A stretch of 63,756 nucleotides of DNA, counting the filler, from Parasitella parasitica NRRL 2501 (lineage: Eukaryota > Fungi > Mucoromycota), in NCBI GenBank assembly GCA_025201805.1. It is 15 parts of 15 records of this genome, joined end to end, with 100 filler letters (N's around TTAATTAATTAA, not from the genome) between each part and the next. Parts side by side here need not be neighbours in the genome. Positions count along the whole stretch, not along the records: positions 7,638 to 10,044 come from MU619562.1; 14 more parts are not named here. One strand, written 5' to 3'. Positions 7,638-10,044 of this stretch are shown piece by piece (position 1 is the first letter of the stretch; every line of letters begins with the position of its first letter). Made by a program: the position numbers and the translations under genes. A model generated the notes under the pieces. That model was given only the letters and a program-made list of their open reading frames with translations, made no database searches and was not told the origin of the DNA.

Positions 7638-7752
7638 AAAATCACTGGTATACCAAATTACAGCCAATCAGGGATTTGTATGTGGACCAACCTGGACCAA
7701 CCTGGACCAACCTGACCAACCTGGGCCAACCTTTTCTTAAAATCACTGGGTA
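7638..7752 (+). repeat. Left repeat array: ~100-bp unit with nested (GGACCAACCT)n decamers and a CCAAT box
   Basis: aaaatcactggtataccaaattacagccaatcagggatttgtatgt, then ~5 decamers, then ttttcttaa and the start of a second unit. Confidence 0.93.
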
Positions 7753-7795
7753 TGGCTTTTAAAATTTATTTTCTCTTGAATTCTTATAAATTGTC

Positions 7796-8017
7796 ATGGA
7801 TGCAAACATCTGTAAAGGCAAAATAACAAGGGACATGGCCCTCTGCATTTTTTTTTGCCAGGAATATAGCGAAGACAATGCAAAAATTTTGTCTAAAAAA
7901 CTTGAAGCCATGAAAGTTTTAGAGATTTGCTATACAAATGACCCGAATTTACCAATGTTGATGTCGCTAATAAGGATACAAACCAACTCATCAGAATATC
8001 ACAAGTACTCATCGTGA
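7796..8017 (+). CDS. 73-aa protein, stand-alone paralog of the N-terminal domain of the 9855-8549 gene
   Basis: Ungapped alignment with the N-terminus of the facing gene gives 28/62 identities (ITR..A.CIFF..E...N...L...L.....LEICYT.DPN.PML...S.YH.Y). Confidence 0.8.
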   Translation: MDANICKGKITRDMALCIFFCQEYSEDNAKILSKKLEAMKVLEICYTNDPNLPMLMSLIRIQTNSSEYHKYSS

Positions 8018-8548
8018 CAAATGGCACGAATATACATTACCCCTTTAACAATCTTGTTTTTGAAAACAAACTCCAGTCAATGAATCAAAAATGGGCATAA
8101 ACCCATACAACTTCAATTTTTGTAATTGAAATAAAATCTAACAATAATAAATAAGTATTACTATTATATTACGTCTGTCATGAAGCTCATCAAGTTTTTT
8201 TTTGATTTTGAAGACTATGTTAATTAATAGCGAGTCAGTAACTAGAACTTACGGTCGTCTGCATTGAGCGAAACAGCACTTTGAGATGGCTATTCTGCGA
8301 ATTGTAATAAAGTAAACGCTATCATGTCAAGATTTTTAACTGAGATAGCAAAAATAACTATTTTAAACTTTTTATGTCTACATAATTAATGTCAATCGAC
8401 AGATCAGAAAGTGTGAATATAGCACATTTTCCATGAAATCGTTAATTATTTTGTAAAATTTGATTGTATTCTCTGCTATCTTTAATTTTTTTTTATGAAT
8501 ATGATCTTTATATGAGTAACTAATAATTAAAACACGTAGAGTGACAAG

Positions 8549-9855
8549 TCATGGCATCAGAGATCGTCGTACTGGAGCAGAGCGACAATCGAAAAGCTGA
8601 AGTACAGTCTCATCTGAAAGAATCTGCTCCCTGGTTAAGTAATAAGCTTCGTTGTGAGATTCGATATTGTCGATCACTATGTTTTTTACAGTCTTATGAT
8701 CACTATAACAATTGCATTAGAGGACATGATAATTTAAGCATATTGCTGCATTACCGAAGAAATTGGACCAAGTCAGGTTTGTTTGTTGTTAAACCAGCGA
8801 AGTCGATTGCCACAATTGTAACTGGATAATAAGCAGCTGCTAAAAATTGCAGAAAATCTAAAGCAAATTGTTTTAATTTAAGAGGAATCTTCGTAACACT
8901 TCAATGTATTACCTTGAGTGTTTCCTTTAGTCCTTGGGATGACGGTGGTTTTAGTGGTATCACGTTTTACAAAGATTTCATCTGAAGCAGAGCTGTATGA
9001 ACCAAACACCATGTCCACGGAAGAAGCTTTCATCAACTTGTCCACCATACTTTCCAAAAGACGGAGTCTTGTCGTGATTGATTCCTTTCCAGGCAATTTC
9101 CTTACATAACCGATAATTTTACATCCATTGCTTATGAGTTCGTGTAATCTGGCTTGATGTGTTGCTCTAACATTTAGTATTTGTCTAGCTATTGATTCTA
9201 TAGTAAAAAAGAAAAAAACATGAAAATCAAAGGTATGAAAGTATCAGTTTTATTAACTAGTATAATATACCTCGATGTATGCTTTTTAAAACCCATAGGG
9301 AGCGGTATCTTATCTTAGTCTTGGAGGCATCGTTTTTTTGAAATTTGCGGGTTTGGTCAGCAAGCATTAGATCTAACTTGGCTGCGCCGCACCATGTAGA
9401 AAATGATCTTGATGTTTTCTCGTCAAATAGATCGGTAATTACAACAGTTTCTGAGTAAATCTGTTTCATTGATATTTGCTTTTGTTCGTACATGTCACTA
9501 TCCACCGGTTGACCAGATCGATATACTTTGTTCAGGTATTGGATAAGTTGTCTCTGGTTAGCTAGTAAAGTCGTTAAATTAATACATAACAAAACACTCT
9601 TCTTTATCACTTACTTATAATAATTTGTTCTTGAAGATTGGTTGATTTTGGGAGGTCATCTTTGTATCGATGGTAGTAGGATGGAAAGCCATTCACTTTT
9701 AGCTTAGTTTGGAGCATGGGCTTATTGGGATCATCGGTATAGCAAATCTCCAACCCACAAAGTTTTCCGAGGTCTTCTTTGAGTTTTTCAGAGTTTTCAT
9801 TTGTAAATTCTTCGTTAAAAAAAATACATATAGCATGATTTCGTGTTATTGACAT
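8549..9855 (-). CDS. 5-exon, 357-aa protein: conserved N-terminal domain, central region and C-terminal serine-recombinase (resolvase)-like domain
   Basis: Exons 9855-9615, 9561-9271, 9197-8913, 8857-8755 and 8702-8549. All four introns are GT-AG, 52-73 nt, and the frame stays open throughout (1074 nt). The C-terminal half reads KIIGYVRKLPGKES...RLRLLESMVDKL...VDMVFGSYSS...KRD...GNTQDFLQFL...VTIVAIDFAGLTTNKPDLVQFL...VKNIVID. The gene model is well supported; the fold call is pattern-based. Confidence 0.75.
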
Positions 9856-9856
9856 T

Positions 9857-10044
9857 TAAGAAAAAGGTTGGCCCAGGTTGGTCCAGGTTGGTCCAGGTTG
9901 GTCTTAAGTTGGTCCACATACAAATCCCTGATTGGCTATAATTTGGCATCCAGTGATTTTAAGAAAAAGGTTGGTCCAGGTTGGTCCAGGTTGGTCCACA
10001 TACAAATCCCTGATTGGCTGTAATTTGGTATACCAGTGATTTTA
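9857..10044 (-). repeat. Right repeat array: two units (~104 and ~84 bp), inverted relative to 7638-7752
   Basis: (aggttggtcc)n-acatacaaatccctgattggct-taatttgg...ccagtgatttt occurs twice, with 5 and 3 decamers. Confidence 0.93.

Follow-up and report, generated by a model that had tools for sequence, protein, structure and literature searches.

A Mucorales transposon core with a spliced serine recombinase-like gene and a facing paralog of its N-terminal domain

INTRODUCTION

To our knowledge, eukaryotic serine recombinases are known mainly as recent IS607 imports. IS607 elements have GG termini, no terminal inverted repeats, and no target duplication. The Flp/FRT system of the yeast 2-micron plasmid and the bacterial Hin/Gin systems resemble the locus described here in that a recombinase gene lies between inverted repeats that remain identical. 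However, they reside on a plasmid or at a fixed locus and use single short sites, and the DNA-binding domains of Hin and Gin are C-terminal. In IS607-family TnpA, a winged helix precedes the serine recombinase domain, a Y-x-R-x-S motif is present, and short direct repeats are found at both ends of the element (PMC6188088; PMC2715888). Such recombinases are already known in eukaryotes (PMC2715888, PMC3627910). According to a passage in PMC7325037 that cites Doak et al. (2003), the Tec1 and Tec2 elements of Euplotes, a minor family of Tc1/mariner, have inverted repeats of ∼700 bp, a DD34E transposase, and a gene for a site-specific recombinase.

Here, we describe a contig of Parasitella parasitica NRRL 2501 (MU619562.1) that occupies positions 7638 to 10044 of the window, by which we mean the whole 63,756-nucleotide stretch of joined genome parts that was analyzed. 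This piece is the unique core of a long-arm IS630/Tc1/mariner-type transposon of Mucorales, and its assembly broke in the repeated arms. A search of the open literature, which did not extend to subscription journals or Repbase, returned no description of a Mucorales family in which a spliced gene faces a mini-paralog between mirrored Tc1 arms. The family is apparently a jumping-gene family undescribed so far.

RESULTS

Layout of the contig

Analysis of the contig bore out the layout in the original prediction, which had been made before any database search. The two ends (7638-7713 and 9968-10043) are an inverted pair of 76 nt with 100% complementarity, and a 73-aa ORF (here, the mini gene) and a facing 357-aa, five-exon gene (the big gene) both lie at the window coordinates given below. 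The two proteins also have an N-terminal domain in common, as had been claimed, the mini protein matching exon 1 of the big gene with 45% identity over 62 aa (E 6e-21). The features of the contig are as follows.

7638..7749, plus strand: left repeat array, which forms the inner portion of the left arm and is truncated at the contig edge (the full array is ∼1 kb in the Backusella copy L026)
7796..8017, plus strand: mini gene, 73 aa, paralog of the N-terminal domain of the big protein
8018..8548, no strand: noncoding spacer between the convergent genes, with 89 to 96% identity in relatives
8549..8702, minus strand: big gene exon 5, predicted last strand of the catalytic domain and short C-terminal helix with a conserved F-x-C-R that can be aligned with IS607 helix E over its first half
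8755..8857, minus strand: big gene exon 4, with D-F-A-G-L-T-T where the recombinase D-R-L-x-R would sit
8913..9197, minus strand: big gene exon 3, predicted long helix and start of the serine recombinase-like domain, with the G-Y-x-R-K-S motif
9094..9096, minus strand: nucleophile position from the family alignment, a Leu codon in the window copy
9271..9561, minus strand: big gene exon 2, predicted winged-helix domain, a weak match to the IS607 TnpA DNA-binding domain
9615..9855, minus strand: big gene exon 1, N-terminal domain of ∼65 aa common to the mini protein, with no database match
9856..10044, minus strand: right repeat array, inverted copy of the left one, cut by the contig edge; the big gene start codon adjoins it

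Both ends of the contig consist of 10-bp tandem units nested in an 82- to 83-bp higher-order repeat. The contig ends within these arrays, a point that the original prediction had missed, as it had the Leu codon at 9096-9094. The 76-nt match is therefore only the visible part of longer arms. The start codons of the mini and big genes each adjoin an array, and the left array may act as a binding region and as the promoter of the mini gene. The big gene is spliced from its five minus-strand exons across four GT-AG introns of 52 to 73 nt, and the exons, free of internal stops, give a spliced frame of 1074 nt (357 aa plus the stop). All four introns are also present in two Backusella copies, and the annotated homologues of the big protein are of equal length and collinear in content. 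In the spacer (8018-8548), Rfam and RNA folding gave no match and no significant structure (folding z = −0.4). A Helitron or a Fanzor-like RNA in the spacer was rejected because the spacer folds no better than shuffles. Two small hairpins were seen at window positions 8091-8130, just 3′ of the mini gene and near the end of a truncated Gilbertella copy.

Complete copies and their Tc1-type ends

Copies with both ends were found at several loci, and they read TA, CAG, arm, array, mini gene, facing big gene, array, arm, CTG, TA. Five are complete: L026 and L027 in Backusella circina FSU 941, L013 in Parasitella, and L011 and L012 in Hesseltinella. All five have TA on both sides and terminal inverted repeats that begin with CAG, with one terminal mismatch in L026, and two of them carry a DD34E IS630/Tc1 transposase. 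No flanking TA is visible in the window piece because it stops short of the outer arm ends. The chassis thus belongs to IS630/Tc1/mariner, and the earlier statement that the element fits none of the standard superfamilies was wrong. The original prediction had also named an internal piece of a known DDE element as a result that would refute it. This is partly the case, given the DD34E Tc1 chassis, whereas the core and its mirrored arms remain unusual. The prediction was right that the element is eukaryotic, spliced, and mobile, and a fixed, single-copy syntenic host locus was ruled out by the occurrence of the layout at different loci in several genera.

The copies closest to the contig are L026 (5.3 kb) and L027 (2.6 kb), whose core differs at ∼1.6 to 2% of sites. 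The left arm of L026 has an outward-reading DD34E Tc1/IS630 transposase gene with one frameshift, followed by the ∼1-kb array, and its right arm has the transposase 3′ end and the terminal repeat only. In L027, the short arm type of the L026 right side is present on both sides. A DDE gene beside L027 was excluded as the element's own since it sits outside the right end. In the 9.6-kb Parasitella element L013, each arm contains an intact, inward-reading gene for a 438-aa DD34E transposase (D245/D346/E381; Pfam DDE_3, E 2e-21). The two Hesseltinella copies, 2.9 kb each, have arms of ∼390 bp and arrays of 12- to 16-bp period around the big gene and the facing mini. No DD34E transposase was found in L027, L011, L012, or the window piece. 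Across the elements, arm length ranges from ∼0.2 to >3.4 kb, and the whole transposase gene can be present twice. The array period is 10 bp in the window family, 12 to 16 in Hesseltinella, 12 to 15 in Parasitella, and ∼20 in L020.

The arrays and the facing mini-paralog are a conserved design and not due to chance, since the core layout recurs in Hesseltinella, Parasitella, Backusella, and two metagenome contigs. It is not seen in every homologue. For L007 and L014, the big gene was found with neither a mini nor an inverted arm within range, and the copies L001, L005, L006, and L010 are cut short. In L025, a core carrying a frameshift lies between host genes without recognizable Tc1 arms; it may simply be a decayed copy. 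L016-L024 (1-1400) contain an array of ∼20-bp period and a related mini gene; a DDE_3 fragment with a frameshift comes next, and the big gene is missing downstream. The metagenome contigs L008 and L009 were set aside as relatives because they match the array motif only (24 to 28 nt) and encode no family protein; they are probably unrelated to the family.

Several other features of these loci were observed. Tc1-like elements are dense around several of them. In Hesseltinella (L011:2876-12829 and L012:7300-15336), different Tc1-like elements lie end to end and have a single TA in common with the recombinase element, and their order is permuted between the two loci, which suggests insertion beside existing element ends or tandem comobilization. 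L011 and L012 also have the right flank in common and may not be independent insertions. In Rhizopus delemar, the copy breaks off before a degenerate right end at an apparent non-LTR retrotransposon fragment (L010:6943-7329), recognized by eye from a YADD-type motif on the minus strand. In Halteromyces, near-palindromic repeats 5′ of the big gene (L014:5820-5960) are related to the Parasitella array motif. In each Parasitella arm, the intact transposase also has opposite it the broken N-terminal part of a second Tc1 transposase (L013:4443-4990), an arrangement that echoes the big-gene/mini layout of the core. Finally, two near-identical family genes, two or three accessions apart, occur on one contig in the case of P0062 and P0129 and of P0150 and P0174 (Cunninghamella echinulata; Hesseltinella). 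These are possibly further mirrored or tandem copies.

Host range and apparent transfer between genera

Every named convincing homologue belongs to Mucorales, and the contig is not human DNA. The genera are Helicostylum, Mucor, Pilaira, Rhizopus, Spinellus, Gilbertella, Apophysomyces, Hesseltinella, Halteromyces, Cunninghamella, Blakeslea, Parasitella, Benjaminiella, Phycomyces, and others. No relative was found among viral contigs, GTDB genomes, or plasmids, and the weak tail of the homologue search contains chance matches, such as a Lactiplantibacillus surface protein. The introns and spacer are 89 to 98% identical in Gilbertella, Rhizopus delemar, and Helicostylum, and another subfamily has at least 90% identity across four genera. 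Because host introns would not remain so alike, the family has apparently moved between genera by horizontal transfer.

The big protein resembles a serine recombinase

The exons of the window big gene were searched separately, and structure work was done on the database homologues P0053 (Hesseltinella) and P0128 (Parasitella). Sequence searches of Pfam (each exon and 67 homologues), NCBIfam, PHROGs, and the PDB returned no recombinase. The AlphaFold model of P0053 (pLDDT 83) has a winged-helix-like middle domain, a long helix, an alpha/beta core, and short C-terminal helices. Several comparisons point to a serine recombinase. In Foldseek, the homologue model matched the Sin recombinase with a probability of 0.98 to 0.99 (TM 0.54 over the target) and a serine integrase with 0.94 to 0.95, with E values of only 0.01 to 0.05 and unrelated Rossmann-type folds ranking alongside. 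Among viral models, the top two matches were COG2452 integrase-resolvases (E 4e-4 and 4e-3). The profile of the catalytic part matched that of ten serine recombinases at E 4e-4, with the motif Ser on the nucleophile (probability 34%, compared to a shuffled maximum of 0.7%). The middle and catalytic domains both aligned in order with 78 IS607-type TnpA proteins (E 0.02 each); this alignment extends to F-x-x-R of helix E over the first half and the turn only, and the catalytic-domain score (19.3) is barely above the best shuffle (18.3). The N-terminal half also gave weak winged-helix matches. The matches to a winged helix N-terminal to a serine recombinase domain are thus each weak (E 4e-4 to 0.08) and agree in order.

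The putative nucleophile is Ser in 41 of the 44 family members. It is Leu in the window copy (GYVRKL) and in L027, and Ser in L026 and L006; the window copy is predicted to be catalytically dead. The Ser-to-Leu change is found in several lineages, and CpG decay is unsupported as its cause, with 8 of 44 transitions at CpG and CpG little depleted. Among proteins of 25 to 45% identity, there is hardly any variation at Y, R, K, and S in the active-site motif or at two more arginines, which suggests chemistry. Lys and Arg residues elsewhere in the big protein are invariant as well. The D-R-L-x-R arginines are replaced, the aligned motif being D-[YFH]-[AS]-G-L-[ST]-T. With other residues in place of these arginines, and with only half of helix E apparent in the alignment, standard subunit rotation is doubtful. 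The description of the protein as serine recombinase-like was upheld. These results are consistent with, but weak evidence for, a remote IS607-TnpA-like serine recombinase whose activity is predicted, and we consider IS607 ancestry likely.

The mini gene is maintained

The mini protein and the N-terminal domain had no Pfam or PDB match. The window mini is 51% identical to the Hesseltinella mini, compared to 39% for the big N-terminal domains between themselves. In a tree, four of the five minis cluster with modest support, and the fifth was put down to conversion. A mini-specific signature (Y-H-L-Y-P-like) was seen in the last third of the protein. Among three young copies, on which the contrast is based, the big gene has 27 nonsynonymous and 9 synonymous changes and the mini 0 and 3, respectively (Fisher P = 0.024); at greater distance, the mini dN/dS is 0.13 to 0.2. 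The mini is a maintained second gene under purifying selection, with its own lineage, conserved while the big gene decays. A role as an excisionase/MerR-type factor was hinted at by the predicted topology but gained no support from the profile comparison (E 0.29 versus IS607 N-terminal domains, below shuffles).

Arms were exchanged and ends recruited

The core family is framed by four different Tc1-type terminal sequences, and the L026 and L013 transposases are ∼31% identical and oppositely oriented. Therefore, the ends were recruited more than once. Exchange between sides is seen at a unique deletion junction, in which a transposase tail is fused to the array. L026 has this junction on the side of the big gene, and L027 has it at either end of the core. 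Likewise, the fourth arm type stands before the mini in L015 and before the big gene in L001, L005, and L010. In the Parasitella subfamily, the inverted repeat extends 48 codons into both genes, and in the inverted repeats of L013 versus L025, 14 sites group by element and 0 by gene. The arms have been homogenized within each element and exchanged between sides, and ends, once recruited, were mirrored, whether by the enzyme or by gene conversion in the host. Even with no contribution from the enzyme, the arms could be homogenized by ordinary conversion between long inverted repeats. The 100% identity of the L013 arms may come from the assembler copying one collapsed repeat because there are N gaps on both sides of the core. 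No fixed crossover site and no common crossover dinucleotide were found at the array edges inspected. At L013:6001-6145 and 7709-7853, the first 48 codons of big and mini have been made identical by gene conversion, and a similar pattern was seen in Blakeslea proteins, listed with P0109 and P0152.

DISCUSSION

The Tec elements are the nearest analogue of the Mucorales element, which is built alike but is not a Tec. Long terminal inverted repeats, a DD34E transposase, and a recombinase gene are found together in L013 and L026. However, the Tec recombinase is a ciliate tyrosine enzyme, whereas the Mucorales enzyme is serine type by fold and motif, is spliced, and faces a paralog of its own N terminus; the transposase is inside one or both arms, and the Tc1 ends around the core family are unrelated. 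With the IS607 family (IS607, IS1535, ISC1926, Fanzor2 elements, and the Lachancea kluyveri copies), the element has the domain order, Y-x-R-x-S, and repeats at both ends in common. The Mucorales protein differs in having an extra N-terminal domain, four introns, no D-R-L-x-R arginines, and apparently half of helix E. No ORF for a TnpB/Fanzor2 second gene was found in the core and, unlike IS607, the element is bounded by terminal inverted repeats and a duplicated TA, so it is not an IS607 member. With IS630/Tc1/mariner, it shares the TA target duplication, CAG-starting ends, DD34E transposase, and nonautonomous derivatives. It differs from Fanzor1-bearing Mariner in the wide range of arm lengths (∼0.2 to >3.4 kb), in a transposase gene that is sometimes present twice, and in a cargo that is a two-gene recombinase-like module with its own arrays.

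The model that we favor, with modest confidence, divides the work among three proteins. The DD34E transposase, from an arm or in trans, would carry out the jumping, as in Tc1/mariner biology, and Ser-to-Leu copies could still multiply for this reason. Less surely, the big protein, as an IS607 TnpA descendant, would bind the arrays via its winged helix, and would cut and rejoin DNA between two inverted arrays, a recombinase activity that we infer. IS607 TnpA polymerizes on short direct repeats at element ends (PMC6188088). Recombination within one element would flip the core, and recombination between sister chromatids or copies would leave the same flank on both sides. Any Tc1 end beside one array would then become a mirrored arm pair, a new transposable unit. 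Consisting of the shared N-terminal domain only, the mini protein would be expressed from the opposite array and would restrain the enzyme by hetero-oligomerizing or by competing at the arrays. A bolder reading, which we offer tentatively and regard as doubtful, is that the core is a transposon parasite whose IS607-derived, intron-containing serine enzyme, with its rebuilt active site, recombines inverted arrays across sister chromatids, mirrors the adjacent Tc1 end, and repeatedly builds giant palindromic transposons, with the truncated paralog as the off switch.

Alternatively, the big protein may be a DNA cutter, either persistence cargo like Fanzor or one half of a toxin-antidote pair in which the mini neutralizes a chromosome-breaking enzyme. 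Such an enzyme could have kept the nucleophile motif and lost the arginines and most of helix E, and the rapid decay of the big gene after insertion, with the mini intact and Ser-to-Leu in several lineages, fits this view. Tc1/mariner elements with Fanzor1 cargo are also known (PMC3627910). We nevertheless consider it unlikely, since a cutter alone leaves the mirrored arms and the arrays beside both genes unexplained, the selection contrast comes from three copies, and the spacer has no guide-RNA-like structure. Quite unlikely is an autonomous IS607-derived core without TnpB, in which the serine enzyme is the transposase, the arrays are the ends, and the Tc1 arms are chance composites, like Tn10, in transposon-rich DNA. 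The IS607-like domain order and repeated end motifs (PMC6188088), the dense Tc1-like elements around several loci, and the arm-less L025 would agree with this. However, all five complete copies end in TA and CAG with TA duplicated, compared to the GG termini and lack of duplication of IS607. Moreover, the arms mirror each other instead of being two halves of a disrupted target, the frameshifted L025 may be decayed only, and the array edges have no common crossover dinucleotide.

Very unlikely, in our view, is that the two proteins are regulators only, which bind the arrays for transcription or Tc1-end assembly and keep the catalytic domain as a structural relic. Both start codons adjoin an array, as promoters do in long terminal repeats, and key arginines are gone, but the near-invariance of Y, R, K, S, and two arginines at 25 to 45% identity speaks for chemistry. 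That the contig begins and ends in the same repeat could suggest an invertible switch at a fixed host locus, or else an assembly artifact. Both are extremely improbable, given that the layout is also found within long scaffolds, at different loci and in several genera, together with target duplications, and that the 89 to 98% intron identity between genera points to a mobile element.

The family looks long adapted to fungi because of its introns, its spread across Mucorales, and its apparent movement between genera. For the part that the recombinase plays in the ciliate Tec elements, it offers a fungal counterpart that can be tested, and it suggests one way in which giant inverted-repeat transposons may come about. 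A serine recombinase from fungi, directed at short repeat arrays and restrained by a small inhibitor of its own, could also provide a lead for genome engineering.
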